In this document: positions 3 to 51,404 of the stretch, one piece after another
Numbering within the stretch: position 1 is the stretch's first letter
Layout of the letters: each line of letters opens with the position of its first letter
DNA from: Andalucia godoyi And28
Taxonomy: Eukaryota > Protista > Jakobida
NCBI GenBank assembly: GCA_009859145.1
Contig: VRVR01000047.1
Location: 181,093 to 245,092 of the forward strand
Direction of reading: 5' to 3'
DNA length: 64,000 nucleotides
Position numbers and translations under genes: made by a program
The notes under the pieces: model-generated
Told to the model about the DNA's origin: nothing
Databases searched by the model: none
Seen by the model: only the letters and a program-made list of their open reading frames with translations

Positions 3-404
3 GTGTTGTGCATTGTTGCCATGGCAATTGAAGCGGTGCACGACGTGGAAGAGCTGATTAATGGATGGTATTTCATCATATATGCAGTTCATTTCATCCT
101 GCAAGCCGTCTGGATCTTCGACTGTGGTGCTCGAATCAGTTTGGTCTCATGGCAGATCCGAACGACGATTCTACGCGACATTGCAGCAAAGTTCGTCGTG
201 TTCCAGCCCGGCGAGTGCATCATCACCGTTTCCTCTTACATTGCGTACTTGCAGACTGCATATCGCGCATTCAATGTCCTTGGTGTCCCCATCACATACT
301 CTCTCGGCGCAAAAATCACGCAGGTTCTTGTCTTTTTCATCGGCCCACTCTTCATTGCTGCGTTCGTTCTTTACCGCTCTTCCAAAGGAGAAAACACCGC
401 TTAA
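3..404 (+). CDS. 3' part of a multi-pass membrane protein, probably gustatory receptor-like / 7TM ion channel (GRL/DUF3537-like); 5' end lies outside the window
   Basis: Hydrophobic helices; 'WIFDCGARIS' resembles the TM6 end and 'FNVLGVPITYSLGAKI' the TM7 motif of GRL/DUF3537 proteins, paralleling the ORFs at 5333 and 7280. Confidence 0.5.
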   Translation: MLCIVAMAIEAVHDVEELINGWYFIIYAVHFILQAVWIFDCGARISLVSWQIRTTILRDIAAKFVVFQPGECIITVSSYIAYLQTAYRAFNVLGVPITYSLGAKITQVLVFFIGPLFIAAFVLYRSSKGENTA

Positions 405-484
405 TGATGCCAGGATCCCATCAGTCGTACAGTCCAGCTTCGTTACAGTACTTTCGCCCTTTAGGTTTTACCGCTTTTTTTGCG

Positions 485-488
<4 letters not shown>

Positions 489-527
<39 letters not shown>
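489..527. repeat. (TA)n microsatellite
   Basis: Perfect TA run in an intergenic spacer. Confidence 0.97.
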
Positions 528-529
<2 letters not shown>

Positions 530-947
530 CGTCTTCTTTATTTTTTGACTAGTCTTTTTTGTGAAAACGTGTTTTATAAAACTATATATCGCTGTCCACG
601 GTATCATCACTTGGTTTCAAATGCTCCGAAAACGCCCTTTGGAGTCCTCCGATCGACCATCGAAGAAACCAAAGACACCGTCCTCACAACCCGTTCTCGA
701 TGATACGTTTCTGTCGTCGATTGGAAGAGACTCGTATTCTTCTTCTTCATTGTCGTTTTCGTATGGCTTCCCAGAATTCTTACTATTTTTTGTTTATTTA
801 AATTTCCAACAACAACAACAACAGAAGAAGAAAAAAAAAAAAAAAAACGAACACATAGTGTCATACAGTTGTGTGATGGTCGAGAATGTGGGTCTAATAT
901 TATGCAGAGGATCGAATGCGCTGGTTCGCTCGAGCTCGGCGAAGAGG

Positions 948-1911
948 ATGGGGACAGCAGTTTCTGAGCGAGAAGCACGATCGAACCGGCTTCCGAAGCG
1001 GAAGAAGGATAGGCTTCTGGAAGTTGACGTGTCGAAGGAAGAGACGCAGCGCGAGAAGAAACTTGCGAAGATCCAGGAGTTGAAAGACAAGGCGAGTCGC
1101 AGGGCCGATGTGCTGAAGATGCTCAAGGAGAATGCGGTCAATGTCGATCTGCTAGAAAAGATGAAGGAGGCTCATCGTCCACGAAATCACGACAAGGACC
1201 GAGAGTGGGACTTTGATGCCCTCGAGAAGGAAAAGGAGCAGGAGCAGGAGCAGGAGCAGGAATTGGAACAGGCAGCCGAAACACAAAGTAGGGAGTCGGC
1301 AGAACAAGGAGACAGACGACGAGAGCATGCAGTCTTGTCCCGAGCGCAGCGGAAGAAGCTTCGCAAACGCCAGCGGGTAGCGGAAGATGAGAACGGATCA
1401 GACAGCGATCGCAGTGTAGATTCCGAGGATGTCGACGCGCAGAATCGGAAGAGTAGGGGCGCTGAGCATGGCCGTCAGAAAGGGGTAGAATTAGAGTTCC
1501 AGCAGCAGGAGGAGGAGGAGGAGGAGATTATCCCATCGCAGGAATTGATTGGCAAGCTTGAAAAACTCAAACTGCAGTTCAAAGAGTGCGAATCAATGTT
1601 CTTCTGGACGGGATCGCTGACCGAGCGTCTGATGTCGTTTGTCAAGGGATTCATCACGGAGCTCGAAAAGAAGGACCTGCACTCCGAAGCCTCTTGGAAT
1701 CGAACTGTGTCAAGTATCAGGACGTTGATGGAGGAGGAAGCAAAGCGGTCGTGGTGGAATCCAAGATGCAAGAAAACTGTTCAGGGTTTTGTTGCGGCAC
1801 TCTCCACCGAGCAACCGCAGCCATTGGCAACTTCTTCCACACCGTCTTCTTCTGTGGAAACAGCCAAGGTGGATGCTGAACGAAATCTGTCGGCAGCAGA
1901 TGATAAGGACA

Positions 1912-1945
<34 letters not shown>

Positions 1946-4900
1946 GGATGAAGACAAGTCGCATGATTCTGCAGATGAGCCGTTTGAAGAGTACTTCCCT
2001 CCAATCAAGATTCCGTTGCCCGACATGGACAAGCCAGTGGAAGATGGCCCAAAACTGACTCTGCGAGACATTGTGCGAATTCATAGGTCTGCCGAGGTCG
2101 AGTTGCATCGTTCCTCTCTGCCTGCTTTAAGCGCGGAAGCCGATGTTCTTGAAGCAGTGGCAAACAACCCAATCATCCTTGTCTCTGGTTCCACGGGTTC
2201 CGGGAAGACCACGCAGATTCCTCAGATGCTGTATGAGCAAGGATACCAGCGATTTGGAAAGATTGGGGTCACTCAGCCCCGCCGAGTTGCAGCGACCTCG
2301 ATTGCGAGGCGTGTTGCTTTTGAAATGAATTTCGATCTTGGAAAAGAAGTCGGCTATGTTGTGCGTCATGATTCGAAAGCCTCTGACCAAGTCAGCATTC
2401 TGTTCATGACCGACGGAATCCTGCTTCGACAATTGCAGAAGGACCCGCTGTTGATGGAGTACTCGGTGATCATGATTGATGAAGCTCATGAACGGTCGGT
2501 TACGTCGGACATCCTGATTGGAGTCTTGTCGCGGATCGTCCATGTTCGTTGGACAATGCCCGAAAACAGGAAATTGCGCGTTATTCTCATGTCCGCTACA
2601 CTTCGCGTTGAGGAATTCCGAGACTCGTTGAAGCAACATTTGCCTCTTGTGGCCATTGAGAATCGCCAGTTCCCTGTCGAGGTCCATTTTGCCCGAGAAA
2701 CTCCAGATGATTACGTTCAGGCCGCGTTTGATCGAGTGCTGAGAATCCACGCAACGACCAAGCTAGAGGGTGGCGTATTGGTATTCATGACGGGTAGAGA
2801 GGAAGTCGAGCGGTTGTGTAAGATGTTGCATGACTGGGAATCCAATCGGGACGAAAAATTGAGGCAACTTGCACTGCGAAGAGCAAGAGAAAAGGAAGCT
2901 GAAGAAGCCGAGGAAGAGAAGAAGAATGGAGATGTGATTATCTTGCAGCCAGAAAGGTTTACGGAAGCAGACGCGACGGTGGAGCGGAACGAGTTCATGG
3001 CCGCACTCGACGTCTTGTTGCAGCGTAAGCAGTCCGAGGAATCGTTACTGCCACCCATGTCGTCGCACAATGACGCTAAAGGAGTGGGAAAGAAGACGAC
3101 GAAGAACAACAAAAGCAGCAACAGCAGCAGCAAGAGAGGCACAAAGGTCGAGACCGCATCTTCTTCTGCAGAGGAAGAAGAGGAGGAGAAGACATTTCTC
3201 CATATTCTGCCCTTGTTTGCGCTCATGGACATGGACAGGCAGAACCAAGTATTTGAACCAGCGCCATCTCCAAAACATCGACTGGTAGTGGTGGCGACGA
3301 ATGTTGCAGAGTCATCGCTCACAATTCCTGGAATTCGTTTCGTTGTTGATTCGGGACGACACAAGACGCGCGAGTACTCTGCAGCCACTGGAGTTGGATA
3401 CATGCGAAACACATGGATTGCACGCTCGAATTCCGATCAACGTGCAGGGCGTGCAGGGCGTGTGGGTCCTGGAGTTTGCTGGAGATTGTTTTCTTCTGCA
3501 GTGTTCGCAAACCACATGCCGCAGTGGGACGTCCCAGAACTTGCGAAGGCGCCGCTTGAGGGCGTGGTGTTACAGATTCTCTCCCTCGGAGTGCCATCTG
3601 TTCGGAAGTTCCCGTTCCTAACTGCGCCTGCCCCGTCCACTCTGGACCGAGCAATCGAGCTTCTGACCGTGCTGGGAGCGATTGTGGACGATACAGAAAC
3701 ACTGTCGCCGCTTGGACACTCGATCGCAAAACTTCCTGTACATCCTCGATATGGAAAGTTGCTTTTGCTCTCCAAAGCAAACGGGTTGCTGGAGTACGCG
3801 ATATCCCTTGTGGCTGCTCTGTCGGTTCGCGAAATCATTCCTTCGTTTGCAACTCTCACGGAAGAGCAAAAGCAAAAGATACTGCATCTTTCTCATCCAA
3901 AGTCGGATTTCATCACGTTTCTACGCATCATGGGCGCCGCGGAGTTCTCTCTAGACAAGGCAAGCTTTTGCAACATGTTTGGTGTTCTGCCAAAGCCGCT
4001 CAGCGAAGCCTTGAATTTGAAGCGACAGTTGCACATGATGTTTTTCAAGAAGGTTCCCGAGAAGAAGTTGCCTCCGCCGTCGCAAGAGGACCAGGATAAA
4101 TTGTTGACGTTGATTGCTTCTTGCTACCTTGATCGCGTCGCTCGTCGAGCCACATTGGAAGAGCTGAATGTGAAGAATCTGAAGCGGGAGTGGTTTTACT
4201 TCGCGATGGGATCGGACAAGCCGGTTCGGATCTACCGGGATTCAGGAGTCTCGCGACACGTAACAACGTCGTCTACTGTCCGTGAAGAAGACTGGCCGGA
4301 GCTGTTGATCTTTGACAGCATGGAGGACAAGGAGGTTCGACGTGGGTTTTCCCAAAATGAGTCTGCTGCAGTCGCGCCACAAGAGGGCAAAAAGACGATT
4401 TTGGACAAGAAGGATAAGCTCGACGTTGAGAATGACCATGATGATTACGCCGAGATGGACTCAGATGCGGAAAAGGAAACCAAGGGCCCCTCCGAGCTTG
4501 TTGAGAAGCATCGGTATATCCGAATGGTGTCGTGCATCACTCCCGATGTTCTCCTTCAGGTCGATTCCTCTGAGCGGTTCGTCAAACGTTCGAAGCCGCT
4601 TGAGACTCCGTGTCCATTCTACGATCCGGAAGAGGACAGAATCATGGCTCATTATCGCGTTTCGTACAATCGAGACGAGTTTGACTTGGGAATCTTTACT
4701 CTTGCAATGCCCTTCTCACTTGAAAGCATTCGCTGGATTGCACGCGGCTTTTTGGAGGGTTGTTTGTTTGAGGGGTTTCCGCGAAACGACCTGGACAAGA
4801 GAAAGACTTTCTTGTCAACGTCGCCGTCGCTTGCTACTCGTGGAAGTGTTCCGCATCCAAAGGCTGCGTTGTTGATCCAAGCCATCGGGCGCCGCAAGTT

Positions 4901-5261
4901 GACGAGTGCGAGATCGTTCATCGAAATGTGGCAGAAGGAACCGATGGCTCTCTGGAACGAGTATTCCGAATGGCTTGTCCCCGAACATAGAGTGTCTCCA
5001 AGTATGTCTGGATTCGCTTGGCCTCCAGTAGATGTCTCGCTCGACTTGGATGCATCTTTCAAGAGACGGTCCAAGACTCTGAAGAAGTCGCGTAAAGCGA
5101 AAGCGAAAACGTCGGCTTCGGCGTCGGAGGCGGGTGATGTCGAAGCTCGCGCGCGCCGTGTGTCACAGAGCCAGCGCCTTTTGGAGTTGGAGTTGACAGA
5201 CACAGTGGAGTGGCGGTTTCTTGGTGACGACGATGATTCGGAAGGCGACGCGTCCGACTGA
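948..5261 (+). CDS. DHX37: DEAH-box RNA helicase DHX37/Dhr1 (SSU processome)
   Basis: GSTGSGKTTQIPQ, TQPRRVAA, MTDGILL, DEAHERS, SATL, ATNVAESSLTIPG, QRAGRAGRVGPGVCWRLFSSAVF (Dhr1-type). ATG at 948 (MGTAVSEREARS) resembles the Dhr1 N-terminus. The ORF is open from 561 but runs through a poly-A/AT-rich stretch. Confidence 0.92.
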
Positions 5262-5332
5262 TTGCAGAGTTGACGGGGGACGGACCACGAGGTGGGTGGG
5301 GAGGAGCGGGGGGGACGACGGGACACGTTCGT

Positions 5333-6910
5333 CTAGTTACTGAGAAGCGTTCGTTCGAATAAGAACGAGAATATGGCCGTTGACATTCCGATCAGCTTGA
5401 GCATTGCGCGATACGTAACATCCATGCCCATGATCGATACCGGCTGACACTCATTTCGCAGTGTCGCAAAAAACGTGGAGAGCAACATCAAATCTGCAGA
5501 GCGCCTGGATGTGCCGTCCGAGTCTGAGGCTAAGACCGAGGCTGAGACCGATTTCGATGCTTGCAGCTGGCGCAGAGGGGTGTCGCCCATTTGGGACCGA
5601 CGTCTGGTCAGCTCGGACCATTCGATAACGGCCCTATGAAATTGCTTCTTGGGAACTTTGGAGGCCGACTTGCCGGTGTTCGCAACGCTGCTGATGGGCA
5701 CATAGAGTTCCAGCTGCAATTCGTCGACAACATGCCCCACTGTGATGTGGGACACAAGCCGTGCAAACCTTTTAGTTTGCTGCGAAGCTTCTGCAGCAGG
5801 TGAAACGCAGAGCAGCAACAAGACAAACATGGCCAATGCCATGCACGTCAGAAAGAGAGATCCCACTGACGATTCAAATAAAGAAGCTATTGCGCCGACC
5901 AAGAAGAAAAAGAACAAGAAGACAAGAGGAAACACAAAAGCCGTGAGCGATGCTGAGATTCCAAGGGCGAGAGCTTGCTGCTTGGCGAACAGATCCAGGA
6001 TTTGGGAAAGCGAGATTCTCGATGTCTGGCGCTCCGTCGAAACTGCGGAAGGATAAACTCCAGCACCATCCTGGTCCTCATCCACTCTCTCATTCGAACT
6101 GGCACGCGAGCGCACGGCCCAATAAAACAGCTCCTCAGTGACGTTCAACTGGAGCAGAACCATGATTTTGCACAGGTAGGCCACCGGAATCACTCCTATG
6201 AAGATCGAGACATACGGAATCGAGTAGAAGCATCCGTCTGACCACAGTTGCAACGAGCTTGCAGACTCTCCATATGTAATGAAATTGATGTACGCGTTCA
6301 ACCATGCTGCCGCCACACCAACACCTACCGCCACAAGCGATCTTCGAAGCACTGAACTGTGAAGCTGCTGCATTCGGCTCTTGTTGACGGAGGGAAACGT
6401 CGTGTGGATAATTGGGCCGACTCGCTCGTAGCACGACCATTGGTACATGACCAAGGCAACGAAAACCGAGAGCAAAATGAGCTCGACCAAGCTTCCGTAC
6501 ACTGCATACCCAGACTCGGACAACAAGTCCACAATCTTGACGGCTTCCACCATCCCAAACGAACACACAATCAACGAACGGATGCACAGTCGAAGCCAAC
6601 GAGGACACTCCGGCAACAGCGAGCACGCAAATCCGGTCAGCACAAGACTGTACAATGGAATTACGGGAAGGTCCACAATATCGTTCTCCAATTGCAGCTG
6701 CAGTCCGTCTGCTGCACTTCGCGCAGCATCCACCCCGCCTTGATCATTCTGTGCATGCTCGAACCGAAATGGCGGTTTCTCGATATGCGGGCCGCTCCCC
6801 CGTTGTCTTCTACCAGCATGCTTTCTGCGGCAAATACGAAATGCGAGGAAGGCAAGCATCCACAGCCCCACAAGCACCAGCTGCACGATCGGAATCACCA
6901 TGCTCAACAT
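5333..6910 (-). CDS. Gustatory receptor-like 7TM ion channel (GRL/7TMIC) family protein, paralog 1
   Basis: About 8 hydrophobic segments; 'LLLCVSPAAEASQQ' (TM6) and C-terminal 'VSIMGMDVTYRAMLKLIGMSTAIFSFLFE' (TM7); clear paralog of 7280-8932. Confidence 0.7.
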   Translation of the reverse strand: MLSMVIPIVQLVLVGLWMLAFLAFRICRRKHAGRRQRGSGPHIEKPPFRFEHAQNDQGGVDAARSAADGLQLQLENDIVDLPVIPLYSLVLTGFACSLLPECPRWLRLCIRSLIVCSFGMVEAVKIVDLLSESGYAVYGSLVELILLSVFVALVMYQWSCYERVGPIIHTTFPSVNKSRMQQLHSSVLRRSLVAVGVGVAAAWLNAYINFITYGESASSLQLWSDGCFYSIPYVSIFIGVIPVAYLCKIMVLLQLNVTEELFYWAVRSRASSNERVDEDQDGAGVYPSAVSTERQTSRISLSQILDLFAKQQALALGISASLTAFVFPLVFLFFFFLVGAIASLFESSVGSLFLTCMALAMFVLLLLCVSPAAEASQQTKRFARLVSHITVGHVVDELQLELYVPISSVANTGKSASKVPKKQFHRAVIEWSELTRRRSQMGDTPLRQLQASKSVSASVLASDSDGTSRRSADLMLLSTFFATLRNECQPVSIMGMDVTYRAMLKLIGMSTAIFSFLFERTLLSN

Positions 6911-20192: not shown

Positions 20193-21090
20193 CGTCGTCG
20201 CATGCTCCATGCTCCAAACTGCCATACATCCGTCTGGTCTTGCCAAACGCGTCTATGCTCCCTCCCGCCCCCAGACTATGCCTCCTCCTTCTCCTCCTTC
20301 TCCTCCGAGTTTCGGCGCCGTTTCATCACGATACGTCTGCTGCATGAAAGATTACCAAAAGACGGGGCCTTTCCAACACGAAGAGCGACCCCCCCGATGC
20401 TGGGAAACAATGGTGATTGATGCTGAATAGCAGTAGTCAGTAAGATGTGCAGCAAGCTTGAAGTGTCGCTGCAGCATCACGTGTCATTGGTAATCACAGA
20501 TAGCTAATCTCTTCCGTTCCCGTGTTTCGTTTGTCTGCCAACGGACTCGGAGTGGGTTCCGTTGGGAAACCTGCAGCCCGTTTTGCAAGAGATGCGACGT
20601 CTTCCCCCCCAGCTCACCCTCACGATACTGGCGCCGCCGCCTCGTCAGTAATCATTGGAAGAACGTTATCCGTGGCGACACCTGTCGCGTGTTGGGGCAC
20701 GTACGGTGAGGGGGGTGCAGAAAAAACTTGGGTGAGAAGTGCACAATGCAGGCATTTTAGTGGTGCTCTTAAATGTGCATTTTACCGACGGGAGTTTGGT
20801 CTCTGGGATTTTTTCTTTTAATTTTACACTACTACAAGCTTCTATTTCTCTTTCTCCTTGAGATGCGGCGGAAGTAGGAGGGGTTTTCAAAGCATTTTGT
20901 TATTTTTTTTTCTCTCCCTCCTGCAAGAAAACATCTGAAGATAAGAACAAAACAGACATACACAGACAGGACAAACAAACAAGACCAGAGAGACCCGTTA
21001 CAAACGAAAGAAGAAGAAGAGGAAGAAGAAGGGAAAGCGAGGTAGTGCATGATCGAAAGAGATGCTCTGCAGAGAGATCCGCTGGTCAGA

Positions 21091-21744
21091 TTACTTGCAG
21101 TCGACCTTGGACATGCAGATTTGGTTCTTCATGGCCTCGGTGGTCTTGGGGCAAGTGATGCAGCACAGGCCGTTCTTGCACTCTGCAGTGATCTTGTTGC
21201 GCATGATGCAGTCCATGGGGAGACGGACGAGACGCTGGCACATCATTCCTCCACATCGCTCCATGCGATGGCACATCATGTTGTTCATGGCGGCGTTGGG
21301 GGTGGTGGATGCGGCCATCATCATGGACTGGGCACACATCTGAGCACACGACTTGGGATTGCAGCAGATTCGCATGATATCGCCACAGAGTTCGACGCAA
21401 ATGTCCTCCTTGGCGCATCCCGGGCAGTCGATCATGACCATGTAGCACTCCGGCATCTCCATGATGTCACAGGACATCTTGTTCATGGAGCGCATCATCA
21501 TCATGTTCGTGGACGACGCCATGCCGTTGTTGTTGTTCATCATCATTGCCTGCGATCCGTTCGACAGCGACGCAGGGGACATTTGCTTCATATCCTGCAT
21601 CATCTGCATGTCCGGAGAGCACGCATTCATCATCATCATCGAAGGGTTCATCATCATCATCGGCATCTGCAGCATCATAGACTCCTGGTCCATCACTTTA
21701 GGTGCAGTCGCACAGTCAAACATGCATGTTTCGCGGGCTTGCAT
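21091..21744 (-). CDS. Met/Cys-hyper-rich small heat-shock protein (HSP20/alpha-crystallin domain)
   Basis: 'CDIMEMPECYMVMIDCPGCAKEDICVELCGDIMRI' matches D(I/V)xExxxxYxxxxDLPGxxKEDIxVE; 'HRMERCGG..QRLVRLP..I.AECKNGLCCITCPK' matches ERxYGxFxRxxxLP and AxYxNGVLxIxxPK; hand count 48 Met and 23 Cys in 217 aa. Confidence 0.85.
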   Translation of the reverse strand: MQARETCMFDCATAPKVMDQESMMLQMPMMMMNPSMMMMNACSPDMQMMQDMKQMSPASLSNGSQAMMMNNNNGMASSTNMMMMRSMNKMSCDIMEMPECYMVMIDCPGCAKEDICVELCGDIMRICCNPKSCAQMCAQSMMMAASTTPNAAMNNMMCHRMERCGGMMCQRLVRLPMDCIMRNKITAECKNGLCCITCPKTTEAMKNQICMSKVDCK

Positions 21745-21920
21745 TTTTCCAGAAATGTCGTAAGGAAGGGGAGTGAGGTGGAAAACAGTGAGGGACTGAA
21801 AGAGTCGATGTTCGTTGCTGCGTCTTTCTCGGCGAAGAAACTTGAACAAACAAAACAACAAGAGGAAGGAAAGAAGGAAAGAAAAAAGACAAAAGCACGA
21901 GAGACTCGCGTTTCCGAGGC

Positions 21921-21927
21921 TTATATA
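21921..21927 (-). promoter_or_regulatory. Putative TATA box (TATATAA) upstream of the Met/Cys-rich sHSP
   Basis: CTGTATATAAGCC on the minus strand about 180 nt upstream of ATG 21744, followed by a pyrimidine-rich leader. Confidence 0.45.
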
Positions 21928-22373
21928 CAGAATGAAGGCCCACCACAGACATTCGCGTTGTTGAACGCGTCGTCGAGTTCAATATTTCCAGTCGCCACTT
22001 GCCCTCTTGCTAAAAGAATCGGATGCAGGAGCTGTAGCACGAACGGCGGACGACCGGATTCTGGTGCAGGCAGACTGTCCCGTTGCTTGCATTCGCGGGG
22101 AAGCATGTCTGCTTGCTTGAAGTTCGTCTTTCAGTCTGCATACTTTCTGCGGTCGGATATTTCCCCCTCGTCTGCTCAGACGCGTTGCTTGTTCGGGCCT
22201 CCATTTTTGTCATTCCAGTACTTGATCCCCCGCGACATTTTGAGGAATCGCCGTTTTCCACAACGAGCCGCGGAACCTTCCAACCACTCGCTTCGCTTTT
22301 GTTCCAGTCCAGTGGAAGCTGCGGACGCCAAATCTCGTTTTGGGTGGGAGGAACTCATGCAGGAGAATGACGA

Positions 22374-22438
22374 AAATAAATAAATAAATAAATGAATGAA
22401 TGAATGAATGAATGAATGAATGAATAAATAAATAAATA
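22374..22438. repeat. (AAAT)n/(GAAT)n tetranucleotide microsatellite
   Basis: Direct reading, intergenic. Confidence 0.95.
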
Positions 22439-22509
22439 ACTTCACACACAGTGCAACAAGTGCTCGGTGCTCATGCTCGTGTGGAAAAAAAAAGAAAAAT
22501 GCTACCATT

Positions 22510-23079
22510 TTAGTCTGATTTGTGAGGGACTTGGGGGCGCTCGAGAGCATGGCTGACGATTGCAAACAGCTTGATCGCGATGCAAAACGGAACGACGATC
22601 CAGACGCCGTTTGGGATGCCGTACAGCTTCCACCAGTCGAGCTGCGACGCATGGCCGGACGCATGCCACGGCGGAGTGGACAGCGCGTCTTGGCCAAAAT
22701 ACAAGACTGTTTTCCAGAGCTGCATGCAGTTGACGACGAGTAGCATGAGCGTCGATTTCGCGTTGTTGGTGTTGTTGTTTCTTCTGGAAAGGACTGTGAG
22801 CGCATACACGATCAGCAGCTGCTCGGCGGCATTGCACCACGACTGCGCAACCACAAACCCATCCGTCAAGCTGCTGTACAGCGTGTCCACCGACACGTAC
22901 AGCTGGTACGGTGCCCACAGACGCGACTGCATGGAAAACGGCCGTAGAAGTACAAACGACGCGTCCCACGCAATCACCGCCACTTGCAGCATGAACCACC
23001 ATCGGATCCACGCAGGCACAGCCGCCACACCGCGCGCATCAGCAGCAGAATTCCCGCCCGATCGCTCAATCTTTCCCAT
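22510..23079 (-). CDS. EXPERA / emopamil-binding-protein (sterol isomerase-like) family membrane protein
   Basis: Four TM segments; 'LWAPYQLYVSVDTLY', 'DGFVVAQSWCN', 'KTVLYF', 'LYGIPNGVWIVVP' are typical EXPERA motifs. Confidence 0.8.
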   Translation of the reverse strand: MGKIERSGGNSAADARGVAAVPAWIRWWFMLQVAVIAWDASFVLLRPFSMQSRLWAPYQLYVSVDTLYSSLTDGFVVAQSWCNAAEQLLIVYALTVLSRRNNNTNNAKSTLMLLVVNCMQLWKTVLYFGQDALSTPPWHASGHASQLDWWKLYGIPNGVWIVVPFCIAIKLFAIVSHALERPQVPHKSD

Positions 23080-23344
23080 TTTCCCACCCGCCGTCTCTTG
23101 TTTGCTATCGTAAGTCACTGTCCTCCTCTTTTGATCGTTCGCAATAAGCAGACGCAATGAGAGACAGAGACAGAGACAGAGAGAGAGAGAGAGACGAAAT
23201 CAGGAAACATTGCGCCGCTTTCGGTTTGCTTTTTATTATTAGTATGATTTTTACGACTGATAAATCTTCTCGTAATGATCTGTTCTTGTTTTGCAGAGCG
23301 AGTGCGTGAAGCACTGCGATGATACTTAAGAATTAATTGATGTT

Positions 23345-24543: not shown

Positions 24544-26028
24544 ATGGGATGCTGGCAGTCGAAAAACACACGAGAGGTCGAGAGACGTAATGTAGAAGAA
24601 CACAAAGAGACTCGAGGAACCGGAGATGCAGAAGAGAGCAATCAGTGCTGCGGTGCCCGTGGCGGTGATGATGGAGGTGGATGTGGAGAGATGCAGAGTG
24701 TGGGATTCCGTCGGATACCACCTTCGCAGTCGGATCCTGCGCTTTTCCCGTCGGCTGTCCGTCAGCCGACAATGTCGTCGTTTTTCCGAATCGCGCAAAA
24801 CCACCACGGCGAGAGGACGAGCGCGAGCAAGACTGAGAACAGTAAGACTCAGAAGAAGCAGGATGAAAAGAAGAAGAAGAAGAATAAGAAGAAGAAGTTG
24901 ATTCCGAGTCCGTGTGATGTGGACATTTGCCGTGTCTCGTCGTCAGTGTCGGTGCCGTGCTTTCTGGCCAGCAGCACAACAGTGTCTGATCATGATGACC
25001 CCCGCGATGGAGGTCGTCGTCGCAACGATCAAGACGGTGGCGGAGAAGGCGGAGAGGAGGAGATTGAGGAGACATACTGGGTGCACGGCAAGGATGACGG
25101 AGGGAGAGGAGTGGAGCGGCAGGTGATGGCAGAGCAGAGCACGTTTTGGAGACGCCGCGGGCTGGAGGGACCGGAGTCGGGGCGTGAGCAGAGGATACAG
25201 GGCGCAGAGCAAGGCGGTTGGCTGGTCGTGCGGTCCGAGGACCCGAATTCTCTTCCGGTGCGCGTGGATGTGTTCGACGCTTCCGGGAAATGGTACTCGG
25301 CGGTCTTGACGGGCGTGATGCACACCACGATCGATGTCTCTGATGCGCTCTTTGTCACCTACGTCTGCGGCGCTCACTCGGTCGTTGAGACCCTCTGGCC
25401 CGCGCATTGGTCCGCCTTTGATCGACGCGCAGCGACTCTCGTGCCACACCAACACCAGCTTCAGCGCCGCGTTCAACGAGGAGAAGGGGAGCAACAGCAG
25501 CGAGAAGAACAGGAAAAGGTCGGAGAGGCGGATTGGGTACCGATGCGCACTTGCACTGTCGCATGGTCCACTCAGCCCACTGCTCATGTCAGCCGACTGA
25601 CTCCATCTCCGCAGCTGGCTCCACTACATCAACAGCAACCAGGGCGATCGCACCTGGTGGTGCATCGGTCGTACGTGTGTCGGACGTCAAGGCAGCTCGT
25701 GGCGAAACGCATGGTGCGTTCCGAACGCCACGCAGATCTCCAATGGTCCGTCATTGATGACGACTCGGAGCTTGGCGTCTACATCCCCAACCGCTTCTCC
25801 CTCGCCGCTATCCAACATGCCGATCCAGTGGCGGCCGTCATTCCGGAACTCTATCCGCCACCGATGTTGGAACAGCTGCAGGTCCCTCCGCCATCACAAC
25901 ATGCATCACAACATGCATCACACCACGTAGAAAAGGACGAAGAAGACGAGAGCCAAGTGACGCTCGAGTTACTAGAGTGCAGCCCACACCTGAACTCACG
26001 GCCGATGAATAATGCCGCGTCATTGTGA
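24544..26028 (+). CDS. Hypothetical protein; N-terminal MGC (possible myristoyl/palmitoyl site) and a possible Tudor/Agenet-like segment
   Basis: MGCWQSK start; 'VRVDVFDASGKWYSAVL' resembles Tudor-like beta strands; low-complexity linkers; 5' half uncertain. Confidence 0.5.
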   Translation: MGCWQSKNTREVERRNVEEHKETRGTGDAEESNQCCGARGGDDGGGCGEMQSVGFRRIPPSQSDPALFPSAVRQPTMSSFFRIAQNHHGERTSASKTENSKTQKKQDEKKKKKNKKKKLIPSPCDVDICRVSSSVSVPCFLASSTTVSDHDDPRDGGRRRNDQDGGGEGGEEEIEETYWVHGKDDGGRGVERQVMAEQSTFWRRRGLEGPESGREQRIQGAEQGGWLVVRSEDPNSLPVRVDVFDASGKWYSAVLTGVMHTTIDVSDALFVTYVCGAHSVVETLWPAHWSAFDRRAATLVPHQHQLQRRVQRGEGEQQQREEQEKVGEADWVPMRTCTVAWSTQPTAHVSRLTPSPQLAPLHQQQPGRSHLVVHRSYVCRTSRQLVAKRMVRSERHADLQWSVIDDDSELGVYIPNRFSLAAIQHADPVAAVIPELYPPPMLEQLQVPPPSQHASQHASHHVEKDEEDESQVTLELLECSPHLNSRPMNNAASL

Positions 26029-43194: not shown

Positions 43195-43631
43195 GCTCAG
43201 TCACGCACAGACCAAAGCGCACACACCGCCCTCGAACCAAACAAAATAAAGAAAACAATCCGTACAATCCGCCGACAAGGCAAAAGGAAAGAAAGAAAAG
43301 AAAGAAAAAGGAAAAAAAAAAGAAAAAAAGAACCGATACAGCGATGAAGAGAGCAGTTGTTTGAAAGATTCCTACGAAGAAAGTTGCCCAACGATGAGCA
43401 GGAACGGAGGAAGGGTATCAGACAATAAGCACCTTGGAGTTGTTGTGTGAAACAGTAACGAAGAGTTGGGGATAACAGCAAAAAGAGTGAGACGGTATTT
43501 GTCACTTCCATCGAAGTTACCGAGCATGCCATGGAAGCGACCTGGAGAATTTTCTGCAGTGAGGACGATGACCTGCGCATGTATTTTTGTGTTTCCTTTA
43601 TCAAGTGAATCAGAGACTTTTCGATAAAACC

Positions 43632-44465
43632 ATGAGTTCTCAATTACCGAATCCGGGAACAAGGTCTTCACGCTTCCTCTTTGGAGTTCTCGGAGCGACT
43701 GTTCTTGCACTGCCGGCGTTTGCGACTTATGAGAGATATCGCAGCGGCCTCTTGCATGGAAATCCGCAGCCCGAGGTTCCTGGATCACCAACAGCATTTA
43801 CCACAAAAGCGCTCGAGTATGGTGGAATGATGTTCCAACGGTTTCATCCTGTTCATAAGATCAACATGCATCTCTGCGGACTGCAGTGCGCTGCAGATGA
43901 CGCGTCGGAACAAGTCATAGTGCATCGCTTTTGCGCACAGGTGAACGAGGACTTGCGACAGTGCATCATCTTTGATTCGGGGCGGTTGGATGCGAAACTC
44001 ATTGGCATCGAGTACATCATATCGGAAAGACTGTTCAATGCGCTACCCGCTACCGAGCAACAACTGTGGCATTCTCATGCACACGAAGTTGCCTCGGGCA
44101 TGTTGGTTGGCAGTCATCTTCCCGAGTCGATTGAAAACTCCGTCGTGTCTCGACTGTCAACCACATACGGCAAGACGTTTCTGACGTGGCAGGTGCAAAA
44201 GGAAGACCCACTGCCCCTCGGAGTGCCTCGAATAATGCAAAGCTTTACTGCAGACGGACAGGTGCGTCAAGACCTGCTGGACCGCAGGGACCTTGTGGAA
44301 GGCTGCAACACTGCGGAAAAGCGCGGCCGTCGTGAGCGTCTGGATATTCCAAAGAGTGCGCCGAAGCATCCTGAAGCAGACGCACTGTGGCACGGTAGAT
44401 TGCTCGAGCTGTCAGTAGCATCCAAAACGGGTGATCTGTCCCCGGATCCGGATCGGAAACGTTAA
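43632..44465 (+). CDS. DUF1264 / oil-body-associated protein (OBAP) family
   Basis: 'HRFCAQVNEDLRQCIIFDS...AKLIGIEYIISERLF..LP..EQQLWHSHAHEVASGML' and 'TYGKTFLTWQ'. Confidence 0.9.
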   Translation: MSSQLPNPGTRSSRFLFGVLGATVLALPAFATYERYRSGLLHGNPQPEVPGSPTAFTTKALEYGGMMFQRFHPVHKINMHLCGLQCAADDASEQVIVHRFCAQVNEDLRQCIIFDSGRLDAKLIGIEYIISERLFNALPATEQQLWHSHAHEVASGMLVGSHLPESIENSVVSRLSTTYGKTFLTWQVQKEDPLPLGVPRIMQSFTADGQVRQDLLDRRDLVEGCNTAEKRGRRERLDIPKSAPKHPEADALWHGRLLELSVASKTGDLSPDPDRKR

Positions 44466-44566
44466 ATCAGGCCATCAACCCATCATCCCCGCCATTTCTT
44501 CTTGCTCGATTGTCCGAAGCATCGTCGGGAATTCTTCTTGTTTTGGACATTCGAGGAGCCGGTCAC

Positions 44567-44616
44567 CACTTGGACAAAACACTTGGACGAAACACTTGGA
44601 CAAAACACTTGGTCAA
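44567..44616 (+). repeat. 13-bp tandem repeat (CACTTGGACAAAA) x about 3.8
   Basis: Units at 44567, 44580 (one mismatch), 44593 and 44606 (partial); about 125 nt upstream of the giant Cys-rich gene. Confidence 0.93.
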
Positions 44617-44741
44617 TGCTGGTCCTTCTTCAGAAAGCCCATTGCTTTGCGCAATCTCGTTCACTTTACAGAGTGCACCACACCAGGTGTTTTCCCACAC
44701 GGATTCCAACATCAGTTCTCACAACGCCCTTATTCTCCATC

Positions 44742-47700
44742 ATGCGACACAACAACCATCATTCCTGTATTTTCCTCTTATTGCTGTTGATCGTGCAGTG
44801 CCTGCCGAGTCCAGCACTGGGGTGCAACGTAGGAGAGTACCCCGATTCGGGGACTCTGCAGTGCGAACCGTGTCCCGCGGGATACTACTGCCCGGATCCA
44901 AGCAGCCAGCCGAGCGCATGCAGCGCAGGAACGTATCAGCCGCTGCTGAACCAGACGTCGTCAGCAAACTGTACAAGCTGCCCTGCGGGGACTTTCTCGC
45001 CGTCTGCGGGCAGCGCGGTCTGCCAGTCTTGTTCGCCTGGGTCGTACTCGACCGGAGGAACATCGTCGTGCGCGCAGTGTGCAGCTGGAAAGTACCAGCC
45101 GTACTACGGACAGACATCGAGTGCAAGCTGTCTGGCGTGCGTCTCGCCGGCATACACGGATGCCGCGGGGGCAGCGCGCTGTGCTACGGTGCAGCCGGGG
45201 TACCGGTTTTCGTCGGTGTCCACGAGTCCGGTCGCGTGTTCTGCGGGGCAGTATCAGCCGCAGTATGGGCAGACGGGCTGCGTGCCGTGCCCTGTCGGAT
45301 CGTACTCCACGGGGAGCGGGTGGGCGTCGTGCCTCCCGTGCGCAGCGGGAAAGGCGTCGGTGGGCGGCCTGGGCTCGTGCGCCGACTGCGTGGCCGGCAC
45401 GTTTTCTGCGAACGGCAGTGCGGCTTGCACGAACTGTCCGGCAGGGACGTACTCGGCAGGCGGCGCGTCGACGTGCACTGCGTGTGCGCCGGGGACGTAC
45501 TCCGCGGCCGGGGCGTCCGGGTGCACTGCGTGCGCCGCGGGGTTCCAGTGTGCGTCGCCCGCGGCCCCGGTTGCGTGCAACACCGGGGAGTACGCGCCGG
45601 GGGGTGCGACGGCATGCACGGTGTGCGAAGCGGGGTACGCGTGCCCGACGACGACGGCGCATGTGGCGTGCAGCCCGACGTCGGAGTACTCGGCGGCAGG
45701 AGCGACGGCGTGCGCGCCGTGTCCTGCGGGGTACCGGTGTCCGTCGGTGTCGTCTGCCCCGGTGGTGTGCGGCGCAGGGTCGTACGCGCTGCTGGGGTCC
45801 GGGACGTGCACGGTGTGTGCCGCCGGGTACGAGTGTGTCGTGCCGTGGGCGGATGCAGTGGCGTGTGCGACGGGGTACTACTCTCTTGGGGGAGGGTCGG
45901 GGACGCCGCGCTGCACGCTGTGTCCTGCGGGGAGCCAGTGTGCGACGACGTCGGCAGCACCGGCGAGCTGCGCTGCAGGCCAGTATGCGCGTGCCGGATC
46001 GACGGCGTGCACGACGTGTCCTGCGGGGCACCGGTGTCCGGTGGGCAGTGCCGCGCCGATCCCGTGCGAGAGCGGGACGTTCCGGAGCGGGACGGGGCAG
46101 GCGACGTGCGCGGCGTGCACGGCAGGGAACATCTGCCCGAACGCCGCGTCGACTGCGGTGGTGGCGTGTGCAGCAAACATGTATGCGCTGGGCGGGGCGA
46201 GTCGGTGCATGGCGTGTCCGGCGGGGTATGCGTGCCCCAATCGCGTCGGCACGTCGATCACGCAGTGTGCGGCCGGGTGGTATGCGGATGCGAATGCGGC
46301 AACGTGCACGCAGTGTCCCGCGGGGAGCTACTGTCCGTTCCGGGACGCATCGGTAGTGATCCAGTGTCCGCCGGGGACGTATTCGGTGGCGGGGTCGTCG
46401 AGGTGCACGCAGTGTCCCGCGGGCAGCTACTGTGCGGCGGGGTCGTCGACGTTCCCGACGTGCTCCAGCGGTTCGTATTCTCTTGCGGGGTCGAGCAGCT
46501 GCACGAGCTGTCCTGCCGGGTATCGGTGCCCGTCGACGACGTCTGACTACAAGGTGGCGTGTGCAGCGGGGACGTATGCAACGGGCGGGGCGACGGTGTG
46601 CTCGGCTTGCGCGGCCGGGTCGAGCTGTCCGCAGACGTCGAGCTCGACGTCCTCGGCGTGCACAGCGGGGACGTACTCCACGGGCTCGCAGGCGTACTGC
46701 ACGGTGTGCCCGGCGGGGTTTATGTGCCCGAGCGTGCTGGGGACGGGGATCGTGAAGTGTGCGAGCGGCCAGTACTCGATTGGCGCGGCGGCGGCGTGCA
46801 CGGCTGCGACGGCGGGGTTCATGGTTCCGGACGGGATGCAGGACAGGCCGCCCGTGCCGTGCCCGGTGGGGACGTACACGGCGGTGTCGGGCCAGAGCGC
46901 GTGCACGGTGTGTCCCGCGGGCTCGTCGTGCGCGAACCCGGCGGTTGCGCCGGTGCAGTGCGGGGCGGGGACGTACTCGGAGGAGGGATGGGACGTGTGC
47001 CGGGACTGTGAGGCGGGGTGGCTGTGCCCGGCGGGGTCGACGAGCCGGACGCCGGTCAACGCGCTGTGTCCTGCGGGGTCGTACTGTCCGACGGGCACTG
47101 CGAGTGCGGTGGCATGCGGGGCGGGGTCGTACCGCGGAGCGAGTGGTGGTCGCAGCGGGGCGGACTGCGCGCCATGCCCGGCCGGGTACTACTGCGCGGG
47201 GGCGACGGTGACGCCGGCGATCTGCCCGGCGGGCAGTTACTGTCCCGCAGGCTCTCCGGCTGCCAAGGCGTGCGACACGGGGCTGTACAATCCGAGCACG
47301 GGGGCGTTTTCGAAGGCGTCGTGCCTGATTTGTCCCGAGGGGTATGCGTGTGCCGCCGCGGCGACGTCTGGCACGGCGACGGCGTGTCCGGTGGGGTTCT
47401 ACTGCCCCGCGGGGACGATGGGCGCGACGCAGTTTCCGTGCCCGGCGGGGACGTACCAGCCGAGCACGAACCAGGTGTCGAATGCGTCGTGTCTTGTGTG
47501 TCCTGCGGGGTCGTACTGCCCGGCGGGGTCGAGCGCGGCGGTGCCGTGCAGTGCGGGGCGGTGGTCGGGCCTGCAGGGGCTGCACGCGGCGTACCAGTGC
47601 CAGCTGTGTCCGCCGGGGTGGGCGTGCCCGGTGGCGGGGCTGCAGGTGTCGACGACGTACACGTGTGCGAAGGGGCACTACTGTCCCGAGGGGACGAGCA

Positions 47701-50700
47701 ATGCGACGGCGCTGCCGTGTCCGTCGGGGACGTTTACGGACCGCACGAACCTGAGCAGAGCAGGGGAGTGCAACGTGTGTCTGTGGGGGAAGTACTGCCC
47801 GCTGCGGTCGTCCAGCCCGCTGCCGTCGTGCCAGCCGGGATACTACTGCCCGGGCGTCGATCCGGCGTCGGACACGCGGCTGGAGGGGTATGTGGAGCGG
47901 TATGCAATGTTCCCGAACCAGTATGCGTGCAGAGCGGGGACGTATTCGGCGTCGTCGAGTCTGTACGACGCGTCGCAGTGCAGCGGCTGTCCGCCGGGCT
48001 CGTACTGCACGGAGGGGCAGGCGGCGCCGACGGGCACGTGTCCTGCGGGGTACTACTGCCCGGCGAACACGACGTCGGCGACGCAGTTTGCGTGCGCGGC
48101 CGGCACATGGTCGGCGTCGACGGGCTTGTCTGCGCAGGCGCAGTGCAGTCCGTGCCCGGCTGGAAACTACTGTCCGGGTCTTGGCTCGCCGTCGATCGTG
48201 CAGTGCGAGGCAGGGACATACAACGACGCGGCGAACGGCACGGATGCGGCGATTTGCAGGACGTGTCCGGCGGGGAACATGTGCCCGACGATGTGCTCGG
48301 GGCCGCTGGCGTGTGCGGCGGGGCAGTATTCTGCGGCGGGTGCGGCGTCGTGCACGGCGTGTCCGGCAGGGTCGTTCTGTGCGGCAGCAAACACAACGGC
48401 GAGTGCGCTGACGGCGGGCAATGCGTGTCCAGCGGGGCTGTTCTGCCCTGCGTCGACGTCCGTGGTGCCGTCGTCGCCGGCGTTTGACTGCGGCACGGGG
48501 ACGTACTGTCCGGCGGGGTCGTCTGTGCGCCGCAGCTGCAGTCCGGGGTCGTACAACCCGTCGACGACGGTTGCGTCCCAGGAGGGGTGCCTGCCGTGCC
48601 CGGCGGGGAGCTACTGCCTGGAGGGGGCGTCGGCGCCCAGCGGGGTGTGCAGCGCGGGGTACTACTGCGTGCAGAACTCGACGTCGCCGGCGCAGACGCC
48701 GTGTCCTGGGGGCACGTACCGAGCGACGACGGGGGCGGCGGCGCTGGGGGACTGTGCGGCGTGTCCGGCGGGGAGCTACTGCCCGTCGGCGAGCGTGAGT
48801 CCGGCGACGTGTCCGGCGGGTGCGTATTGCGACCCGGGGTCGGCGGCGCCGACGCTGTGTCCTGCGTCGCGGTATGGGAATCTGACGGGGAACCGGAATG
48901 TGAGTGCGTGCGCGCTGTGCGATGCGGGGTGGTTCTGCGACACACCGGGGCTGACGGTGCCGCGGGGGCTGTGCGATCCGGGGTTCTACTGCTTGATTGG
49001 GTCGTCGGTGTCGAACCCGTCGGACATGGCGTGTCCGCCTGGCGGGTACTGCCCGCAGGGGACGGACTATCCGCGGCCGTGCGCAGCAGGGACGTTCAAC
49101 AACTTCTCGGGGGCACAGACGCAGGAGGACTGTGCGACGTGCACGCCGGGGTACTACTGCGCGGGGTCGTCGAATCCGGAGCCGACGGGCCCGTGTTCGC
49201 CGGGGTACTACTGCACGGGGGGTGCGGTGTCGCCGAACCAGTTCGAGGCGCCCCCGGGGACGTACACGACGTACGGGGCGTCTGGACCGACTCCGTGCCC
49301 GCCGGGGACGTTCAATCCGATGTATCGGCAGGCTGCGTGCCCTGCGTGTCCGGAGGGGTTCGTGTGTCCGTTCGCGAACAGCAGCCTGCTGGTTGACTGC
49401 CCGATCGGGTTCTACTGCCTGAACGGGTCGTTCGCGCCAAGCGCGTGTCCGCGGGGGACGTACCAGCCGAAGGAGAATGCGGTGTCCCTGGCGGACTGCC
49501 TGCCGTGTCCCGGTGGCCAGTACTGCTCGGAGAACTCGCTTGTGGCGCCGAGCGGCAACTGCTCCGCGGGGTACTACTGCGCGGGGGGAGCGATGCGCGA
49601 TCGGCAGGCCGACTGCCCGGTGGGGCACTACTGTCCGCGGCAGTCGAGTGCGCCGCTGGCGTGTCCGAGGGGGACGTTTTCGAATGCGCTGCTGCGGACG
49701 CAGCTGTCGGACTGCGTGGATGCGCCCGCGGGGATGTTTGTCAATGTGACGGGTGCGCATGCGGTGTCCGGGGTGTGTGGGGCCGGGTACTACTGCACGC
49801 TGCGCGCGGTGTCGAGCACGCCGACGAATGCGTCGGAGGGTGGTGGCCAGTGTCCGCCGGGGCACTTCTGCGTTGCCGGCTCGAGCACGGCGGTCGGGTG
49901 CGAGGACGGGTCGTACCAGAGCGGGTCTGGGGCCAGCAGCTGCGCGTCGTGCCCGGGGGGCTTCTACTGCGTCGCGTCGTGCAGCAGCCCGGTGGCGTGT
50001 CCGGCAGGATACTACTGTCCGCCGGGCACGGGCTACGGATGGAGGGCGTGTCCCGTGGGCACGTTTTCGAACCGCAGCGGCCTGAACAGCAGCAGCGAGT
50101 GCTCGCTGTGCGCGGGGGGCTACTTCTGCGACGAGGTTGCGCAGACGGCGTCGGTGCGCGCGTGCACGGAGGGGTTCTTCTGCCGGGCCGGGGCCGTGTC
50201 TGCGGTGGGTGCGGTCGCGTCGATTGCGGGGGCCTCCGGAGGGGTGTGTCCTGCGGGCCACTACTGCCCGGCGGGGTCTGCGGATCCGACGCCGTGTCCC
50301 GGCGGGTCGTACAACCCGAACACGGGCTCGACGAACAGGACGTCGTGCGTGCCGTGCTTGCGGGGGCAGTACTGCGCGGGCGCTGGGCTGTCTGCGCCGA
50401 CGGGAGACTGTGCGGGCGGGTACTTGTGCCTCGGGGGTGCGTCGGTTGCGAGCCCGGTGGACAACGTGACGGGGATGGCGTGTCCGACGGGGCACCGGTG
50501 CGCAGCAGGGGCTGTTGCCGCGACCCCGTGCGCTGCGGGGACGTACCAGGATGCCGCGGGGTCGTCCGTGTGCAAGCTGTGTCCGGCGGGCTATTTCTGC
50601 GGCGACTCGACGACGACGCCGTCCGGGTGCCTGCCGGGGTACTACTGCCCGAGCGGAACGCGGTCAGCGACGGAGTCCGCGTGCCTGGCGGGGACGTTTA

Positions 50701-51389: not shown

Positions 51390-51404
51390 TGCTCTGGTGC
51401 TCTG
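51381..51404 (+). repeat. 8-bp tandem triplication GTGCTCT(A/G) spanning the stop codon of the giant gene
   Basis: gtgctcta-gtgctctg-gtgctctg read directly. Confidence 0.85.

Follow-up and report, generated by a model that had tools for sequence, protein, structure and literature searches.

What remains of a small heat-shock protein (sHSP) when about one third of its residues are methionine or cysteine, and what could such a protein be for? The question is raised by a gene on the reverse strand of a 64,000-nucleotide stretch of Andalucia godoyi And28 DNA (contig VRVR01000047.1), the whole of which is referred to here as the window. Translation of this gene (Table 1) gives 48 Met (22.1%) and 23 Cys (10.6%) in 217 residues, exactly the numbers counted by hand in a first-pass annotation made from the sequence without database searches, together with 6 Leu, 5 Val, 1 Phe, 1 Tyr, 1 His and no Trp. 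The product is a true alpha-crystallin-domain (ACD) protein, and its make-up of about one third sulfur amino acids is held in at least two divergent genomes. Among all 113 ATG-started open reading frames (ORFs) of at least 100 residues in the window it is an extreme outlier, with 32.7% Met plus Cys against 14% in the runner-up. The ORFs of at least 300 residues average 2.1% Met and 3.0% Cys, and the binomial probability of at least 71 Met or Cys among 217 residues, at a background of 5.1%, is 2e-37. The contrast with 72 ordinary sHSPs is equally marked: these contain on average 3.2% Met, at most 8.5%, and 1.2% Cys, at most 5.7%, so that Met plus Cys amount to about 4% in the family and to 33% here. 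The share of charged residues is 17.5% instead of about 29%, and that of Leu, Val, Ile, Phe, Tyr and Trp together 10% instead of about 26%. The N-terminal arm is as heavy in Met as the first-pass annotation had described, residues 1-89 containing 28 Met (31%) and 3 Cys and residues 90-217 containing 20 of each.

Two general sources of such a composition were considered and rejected. Genome-wide bias is ruled out by the neighbouring genes, which have 2% Met and 3% Cys, and slippage in ATG repeats as the origin of the Met runs is ruled out because the gene contains no tandem ATG repeat (microsatellite).

Membership of the sHSP family, first proposed from motifs, is borne out by both profile and fold. 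Pfam HSP20 (PF00011) matches residues 93-206 with 24.6 bits against a gathering score of 20.8, and a Pfam scan at E up to 10 returns no family besides HSP20. A sequence search of the PDB retrieves sHSPs only (pea Hsp18.1, wheat Hsp16.9, yeast Hsp26, Hsp21 and Hsp16.5), and hhalign matches a profile of two sulfur-rich proteins, namely the window protein and the relative described below, with one built from 70 ordinary sHSPs (probability 99.6%, E 2.4e-24); identity to ordinary sHSPs is only 22-31%. Structurally, the AlphaFold2 models of the window protein and of the relative, generated from an input alignment of ordinary sHSPs, a choice that favours the ACD fold, both contain strands b2-b5 and b7-b9 of the seven- to eight-stranded ACD beta-sandwich at a predicted local distance difference test score (pLDDT) above 90. 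In the window protein this level is reached at residues 90-130 and 170-210, and the arm and a long loop are of low confidence. Foldseek against the PDB gives template-modelling (TM) scores of up to 0.78, normalized on the target, and the 50 best matches listed are all sHSP ACDs. The check by hidden Markov model and structure prediction that the first-pass annotation had proposed thus does find the fold, and the span it had assigned to the domain (21145-21474) is essentially right (residues 90-200; Table 1).

The residues by which the family is recognized are largely in place. D93, E96, P108-G109, K112, H159-R160, E162-R163, R171, L175-P176, A187, N191-G192 and P199-K200 are all retained, and the combination of a P-G turn, the strand b7 arginine (R171) and the pattern A-x-x-x-N-G-V-L-x-I/V-x-x-P-K is present save for the near-invariant Leu194, which is Cys. 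Of the motifs named from the sequence alone, DCPGCAKEDICVE, HRMER...R171..LP, A187...NG and PK are present, but the spacing from ER to R is one residue longer than had been written. The supposed C-terminal I-x-M/V-like motif gives way, by alignment, to V214-D-C216 (I-D-C in the relative), which occupies columns 214 (I/V) and 216 (V/I) of ordinary sHSPs and would be a candidate anchor if Cys can fit the b4/b8 groove.

Searches for relatives covered about 15 billion proteins. Exhaustive phmmer against 1.84 billion cluster representatives returned one protein of like composition (P0002, E 1e-19), the remaining 73 matches being ordinary sHSPs at E 3e-7 or weaker. Word-indexed protein searches with the single protein or with the two-sequence profile found nothing beyond the protein itself, whose own database record is in EukProt only, and P0002. 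Two back-translated metagenome scans, the first of them built on low-complexity patterns of the arm, brought no more relatives, a weak negative since neither recovered the contig on which P0002 is encoded. That contig (L001) is a 6,860-bp metagenome contig from JGI, and P0002 carries the machine label 'HSP20 family molecular chaperone IbpA'. The gene called there (4960-5421, 153 residues) was shortened by a prokaryotic gene caller; the full ORF occupies 4738-5418 on the forward strand and starts 222 nt upstream. Read from the ATG at L001:4738, the relative has 227 residues, of which 60 are Met (26.4%) and 26 Cys (11.5%), and its arm is likewise Met-rich, carrying MPMMNPMMNPMM and MPMQMQMPMQMPMM. 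At full length it scores 19.6 bits in Pfam HSP20, just below the cut-off of 20.8. With one member just above this threshold and the other just below it, re-coded proteins may routinely escape annotation. The statement in the first-pass annotation that no equivalent had been described therefore needs one amendment: full-text literature searches yielded no sHSP with pervasive Met and Cys enrichment, but one relative does exist among the sequence records.

A frame of this composition could be no gene at all, having arisen by chance or as the mirror image of a gene on the opposite strand, where a His-rich ORF of 444 residues (21049-22383, +) overlaps both the sHSP gene and its promoter. The His-richness of the antisense ORF arises because each sense ATG reads CAT on the opposite strand, and as a real gene this ORF is ruled out: it has no Pfam match and is broken in L001. 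The sense frame, meanwhile, encodes a significant ACD, is intact and alignable over its full length in both genomes, and has a strong codon bias; 24 of the 72 identical columns other than Met use different codons in the two genomes, with crude nonsynonymous and synonymous divergences (dN and dS) of 0.51 and 0.94. The non-gene explanation is effectively refuted. The pattern F-D-x-A-x-A-P-K near the N-terminus, conserved with L001, supports a translation start at 21744 or 21723.

Several features also bear on expression and location. The GC content at third codon positions (GC3) is 0.76, compared with 0.47-0.64 in the neighbouring genes except one Cys-rich repeat gene, and that of the relative is 0.84, compared with 0.50 in the Mis12 gene of its contig. 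A TATA box followed by a CT-rich leader precedes the gene in the window (Table 1), and the layout in L001 is alike, with TATAAA at -157 and then a CT-rich leader. The strong codon bias and TATA promoter seen in both genomes suggest that the gene is expressed at a high level, and the protein is probably abundant when expressed. No canonical three-unit heat-shock element was found within 900 nt upstream in either genome; one near-match lies at -15 in the leader. The N-terminus is acidic and, judged by eye, without a signal-like hydrophobic stretch, from which we infer a cytosolic protein.

To define how the composition is distributed over the fold, each column of the window protein was compared with the 72 ordinary sHSPs. 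Leu is replaced by Cys at 107 and 194, Val or Ile by Cys at 110, 198 and 216, an aromatic residue (Tyr, Trp or Phe) by Cys at 158, Phe by Cys at 169, Leu by Met at 124, and Gly or Ala by Cys at 128. Ordinary sHSPs have L/V at column 107 and V/I/L at column 110, and Cys stands at both in both sulfur-rich proteins. At column 194, which is Leu in 69 of the 72, both again have Cys, and C195 is also kept. Met or Cys also stands at columns that ordinary sHSPs fill with polar or charged residues (100, 104, 116, 120, 127, 153, 156, 157, 195 and 205). The first-pass view of Met and Cys taking over the core therefore holds in so far as several hydrophobic positions are now C or M, but about half of the core-facing positions are still I, V or L, and the shift affects the whole protein, surface included, and not the core alone. 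The protein also has a family-specific 17-residue insert after strand b5 (S132-T148), in whose columns only 2-5 of the 72 ordinary sHSPs have residues; it adds C-x-x-M-C and a Met run, and a short helix is predicted there in the models of both proteins. Within this loop region C127, C128, P130, C133, M136, C137, M142 and M143 are kept in L001.

Comparison of the two sulfur-rich proteins suggests that the composition itself is under selection. They are 49% identical, a divergence similar to that of the neighbouring Mis12 proteins (46% identity), and their alignment has 28 Met columns and 13 Cys columns in common. At the 106 aligned columns where they differ, Met or Cys accounts for 26 residues in the window protein and 35 in the relative, that is 25-33% against a background of 5% (P 2e-11 and 2e-19, respectively), which indicates selection on composition as well as on positions. 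The test for such selection that the first-pass annotation had called for thus finds, in these two sequences, Met and Cys kept beyond the conserved positions. The ratio of Met to Cys is about 2:1 in both (48:23 and 60:26). Outside metallothioneins and storage proteins, selection that preserves composition while positions change is rarely so clear.

A bulk store of Met and Cys is one possible explanation for this pattern. The sHSP scaffold, soluble, long-lived and tolerated at very high concentration, would have been recruited as a sulfur amino-acid reserve that is filled in a resting or stress stage and degraded on regrowth. The maintenance of composition even at variable positions, the constant Met:Cys ratio, the replacement of polar surface residues as well as core residues by sulfur residues, and the abundance suggested by the codon bias are all in keeping with this, and parallels exist both in the sulfur-rich seed proteins, such as the Met-rich storage protein delta-zein with 24% Met (PMC3514235), and in the recruitment of sHSPs as lens crystallins. 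The sHSP hallmarks and 13 specific Cys positions are nevertheless conserved, and these would be superfluous for a pure store. We regard a reserve as rather unlikely; no protein that stores sulfur is known to us from any unicellular heterotroph.

Another explanation takes the fold at face value. An ordinary stress holdase, in which the composition is neutral or tolerated and Met acts as a flexible client-binding hydrophobic residue in place of Phe, Trp and Leu, would keep every sHSP hallmark, as this protein does, and would agree with the plain HSP20/IbpA annotation of the relative. Other chaperone-like proteins use Met-lined surfaces for promiscuous binding. It would, however, leave unexplained the 23-26 Cys, the sulfur residues at charged surface positions and the level of Met and Cys at diverged columns, 25-33% against 5% elsewhere in the genome, and no comparable composition occurs among the 72 ordinary sHSPs sampled, so that we consider it improbable.

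The Cys residues present a different aspect. Only 13 of the 23-26 are conserved in position, and among these are C-x-x-C at 107-110, C-C at 127-128, C-x-x-x-C at 133-137, C158, C179, C-C at 194-195 and C216. Judging from strand order and boundaries in the predicted fold, C107, C110, C127, C128, C133, C137, C194 and C195 should share one pole of the sandwich. Such an arrangement raises the possibility of a sponge for soft metals (Cu(I), Ag, Cd or Hg), a sequestering oligomer comparable to metallothioneins or Csp proteins, in which the Met clusters of the arm would catch the ion and hand it over to Cys sites in or on the ACD. The Cys content of residues 90-200 is 15.3% (15.6% over 90-217), with conserved CxxC, CC and CxxxC; aromatic residues and His are nearly absent, as in metallothioneins; and the eight Cys that topology would place at one pole would suit metal binding. 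In the arm, MPMMMM and MxMxM recall the MMMMPM cluster of Met in human CTR1 (PMC8867124), and Csp proteins hold Cu(I) in a Cys-lined protein core (PMC9484137). Against a metal role, two thirds of the sulfur is in Met, the Cys other than those 13 are not conserved in position, and the Pfam scan gave no metallothionein or Csp family match. Met is, moreover, a weak ligand in a thiol-rich cytosol, where glutathione would outcompete it, and the known Met-rich copper sites are extracellular or periplasmic, locations for which the N-terminus of the window protein offers no signal-like stretch. We consider this role doubtful.

A bolder version would treat the sHSP cage as a 'soft-ligand ferritin', either a metal-sequestering oligomer or a condensate-forming redox sensor. 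Each subunit would contribute about 70 sulfur-bearing side chains, and thioether and thiolate ligands would line the particle by the hundred. In the metal form, Cu(I), Cd, Hg or Ag would be held inside the oligomer and at the Cys cluster of the sandwich pole; in the sensor form, the Met-rich arms would dissolve upon oxidation. Either form, if true, would be a function not known for any ACD protein, and we think it unlikely. The high Cys content could also point to a structural component of a cyst, spore or granule that is cross-linked by disulfides, a role proposed for cysts and granules in the first-pass annotation, and sHSPs do accumulate in the dormant stages of many organisms. That explanation leaves the Met richness unaccounted for and requires access to an oxidising compartment, for which no hydrophobic N-terminal stretch was seen by eye; it appears highly improbable.

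The explanation towards which we lean, tentatively, is that the protein forms an sHSP particle in the cytosol, where its thioether and thiol groups serve as a reversible oxidant sink of high capacity, coupled to a redox-gated holdase. The retention of R171, the P-G turn, A-x-x-x-N-G and an I-x-I-like tail suggests that it still assembles into an sHSP oligomer. The exposed Met residues of the arms and ACD surface, together with the Cys thiols, would absorb strong two-electron oxidants such as hypochlorite, chloramine, peroxynitrite or singlet oxygen, yielding Met sulfoxide and disulfides, which methionine sulfoxide reductases (Msr) and the thioredoxin or glutathione systems would reduce back. 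Oxidised arms would turn polar, and the oligomeric state and holdase activity would change with them, making the particle a redox-gated chaperone. The near-absence of the irreversibly oxidised residues Trp, His, Tyr and Phe fits a protein built for oxidation and repair, and the redox role fits Met and Cys, surface and core alike, the composition kept at variable sites and the probable high expression under one principle; a sulfur reserve would explain the composition equally well, but not the conserved hallmarks. Proteins in which Met exceeds 20% oxidise readily, above all with hypochlorite, and Msr enzymes reverse the change (PMC3514235). The Met-rich region of Hsp21 has been proposed to place chaperone activity and oligomer dynamics under redox control (PMC5427286; PMC3252397), and Met-rich low-complexity domains can serve as redox-sensitive switches of assembly (PMC8394241).

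Several points weigh against this redox role. The conserved Cys at 107, 110, 128 and 194 are core-facing and would scavenge poorly, and the 13 position-conserved Cys, with their CxxC, CC and CxxxC arrangements, resemble a defined metal or disulfide centre more closely than they do a bulk sink. The reaction of protein Met and of ordinary thiols with H2O2 is too slow to rival peroxiredoxins, which limits an oxidant sink to fast oxidants or to very high abundance. No heat-shock or other stress element was recognized upstream of either gene, and the evidence for selection on composition is a single pairwise comparison of two sequences. Whichever of redox buffer, sulfur reserve or soft-metal sponge were right, each would be new for an sHSP.

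Table 1. Features of the sulfur-rich sHSP gene and its product (window positions; residue numbers refer to the window protein)
Feature	Position	Strand	Description
Sulfur-rich sHSP coding sequence	21091..21744	-	217 residues and TAA stop; uninterrupted ORF, intron unnecessary
Putative promoter and leader	21745..21928	-	TATA box GTATATAA at 21921-21928, 183 nt upstream of the ATG, then CT-rich leader
N-terminal arm, residues 1-89	21478..21744	-	N/Q/S/P-rich, MMMM and MMM runs, predicted disordered (pLDDT ~50)
N-terminal motif M-F-D-x-A-x-A-P-K, residues 8-16	21697..21723	-	F9, D10, A12, A14, P15 and K16 invariant between window and L001
Alpha-crystallin domain, residues 90-200, strands b2-b9	21145..21477	-	17 Cys and 18 Met; Pfam, PDB, AlphaFold2, Foldseek, hhalign
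C107-P-G-C110	21415..21426	-	CxxC in place of the sHSP 'L-P-G-V' turn; C-A-G-C in the relative
End of strand b5 and loop insert, residues 127-148	21301..21366	-	C127-C128-x-P-x-x-C133-x-x-M136-C137 and Met run; column analysis
C194-C195-I-T-C198, strand b9	21151..21165	-	L-T-I-T-I/L/V in ordinary sHSPs
C-terminal extension, residues 201-217	21094..21144	-	Putative anchor V214-D-C216 at 21097-21105 in the place of I-x-I/V

The surroundings of the gene are partly shared with those of the relative. On L001 the sHSP gene adjoins Mis12; in the window the two are near neighbours separated by one small ORF (22513-23157, -; EXPERA/EBP-like), and one further downstream ORF is common to both. The orientation of the sHSP gene relative to Mis12 is inverted between the two, and the window alone has an additional ORF (24544-26028, +) between Mis12 and the next shared gene; linkage was thus kept through local rearrangement. 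Upstream of the sHSP promoter the window contains an (AAAT)16 microsatellite (22374-22439), and in the adjacent run at 22200-22400 the minus-strand ORFs read as repeated FIHS. Elsewhere on L001, a muskelin gene (Muskelin_N and Kelch) occupies 3-1121 (-), which we take to be a weak hint that the host of the relative belongs to an opisthokont-type lineage, and a Mac/hexapeptide acetyltransferase at 3358-3956 (-) is divided between two neighbouring ORFs, perhaps because of a short intron or a frameshift.

Taken as a whole, the window is eukaryotic DNA with few introns, a GC content of 53% and a long ORF about every 2.5-3 kb. Its other genes include PrimPol-like, Mis12, DHX37, F-box/LRR, ENT and alpha-amylase-domain genes, and tRNA and Rfam searches of the window returned no matches. 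The DHX37/Dhr1-type DEAH helicase (561-5258, +) has 1566 residues, about 500 more than its relatives (~1000 residues), and its core is 37-42% identical to them over near-full length and up to ~50% identical in partial matches, the named ones being from fungi, animals and an oomycete; so long and divergent a protein suggests a poorly sampled lineage with expanded proteins. A GC island at 44500-51400 (64-71% GC against 46-55% elsewhere in the window) corresponds to a single ORF of 2257 residues (44616-51386, +) that is rich in Ala, Gly, Ser and Pro, with 10.8% Cys, 47 CxxC motifs and a GC3 of 0.82. It contains six stretches matching Ephrin_rec_like (GCC2/GCC3) in Pfam and a signal-like hydrophobic stretch near its N-terminus, and is probably a secreted or surface Cys-rich repeat protein. 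This gene is flanked by those of a DUF1264 and a DUF2608 protein, at 43587-44462 (+) and 51505-52413 (-).

Among known systems, the closest in fold are the cytosolic class I plant-type, fungal and bacterial sHSPs (wheat Hsp16.9, 1GME; pea Hsp18.1, 5DS2; yeast Hsp26; S. pombe Hsp16). They share with the window protein the order of variable arm, ACD and (in the window protein putative) C-terminal anchor and the same hallmark residues; unlike them, the window protein has a 17-residue Cys- and Met-bearing insert after b5 and a putative anchor that ends in Cys. Chloroplast Hsp21/Hsp25.3 is the only described class of sHSP with a Met-rich segment, which lies in its N-terminal region (PMC5427286; PMC3252397). 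In the case of Hsp21, Met is confined to one N-terminal motif preceding an ordinary ACD, and the protein has a transit peptide, whereas in the window protein Met and Cys extend through arm, ACD, loop and tail; its matches to Hsp21 chains cover only ACD residues 173-203, and its acidic N-terminus lacks, by eye, the character of a transit peptide.

In composition, the nearest parallels come from unrelated proteins. Proteins in which Met exceeds 20% are rare, about 170 having been present in NCBI nr in 2012, and among those surveyed as Msr substrates are maize delta-zein, comparable in Met, and a hypothetical protein of Nostoc with 33% Met and 12% Cys, comparable in both, which are reduced by MsrA/B; of the proteins listed, mostly hypothetical, secreted or storage proteins, none is described as an sHSP or ACD protein (PMC3514235). 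No homology of the window protein to the surveyed proteins was detected, HSP20 being its only Pfam match. The sulfur-rich seed storage proteins (2S albumins and delta-zeins) are alike in composition alone: they are recognized by a signal peptide and by the fold or repeats of the prolamin superfamily, and the window protein has neither such a Pfam match nor, by eye, a hydrophobic N-terminus. Metallothioneins are likewise Cys-rich, contain CC and CxxC motifs and have almost no aromatic residues or His, but they are defined as proteins below 10 kDa with 15-35% Cys and with metal-thiolate clusters instead of a fold, and the window protein has 217 residues, 10.6% Cys and a predicted folded ACD. Csps replace core residues of a stable fold with Cys and hold the metal inside (PMC9484137), and this principle is all that is shared, since theirs is a Cys-lined four-helix bundle and the fold predicted here is a beta-sandwich. 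From metallothioneins and Csps alike the window protein differs in its large excess of Met, and it has no sequence relationship to either.

The arm finds its counterpart in the Met-rich low-complexity domain of yeast Pbp1/ataxin-2, which is likewise disordered and rich in Met, Asn, Gln, Ser and Pro, and whose self-association oxidation could loosen (PMC8394241). The proteins are unrelated, and in the present case the region forms the N-terminal arm of an sHSP. If the ACD does tolerate the wholesale replacement of Leu, Val, Phe, Tyr and surface charges by Met and Cys, the protein would count among the natural proteins richest in sulfur that have a defined fold, and would offer a test of the limits to which a fold can be re-coded. 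Such a composition on so well-studied a fold would surprise specialists in sHSPs and in protein evolution alike.

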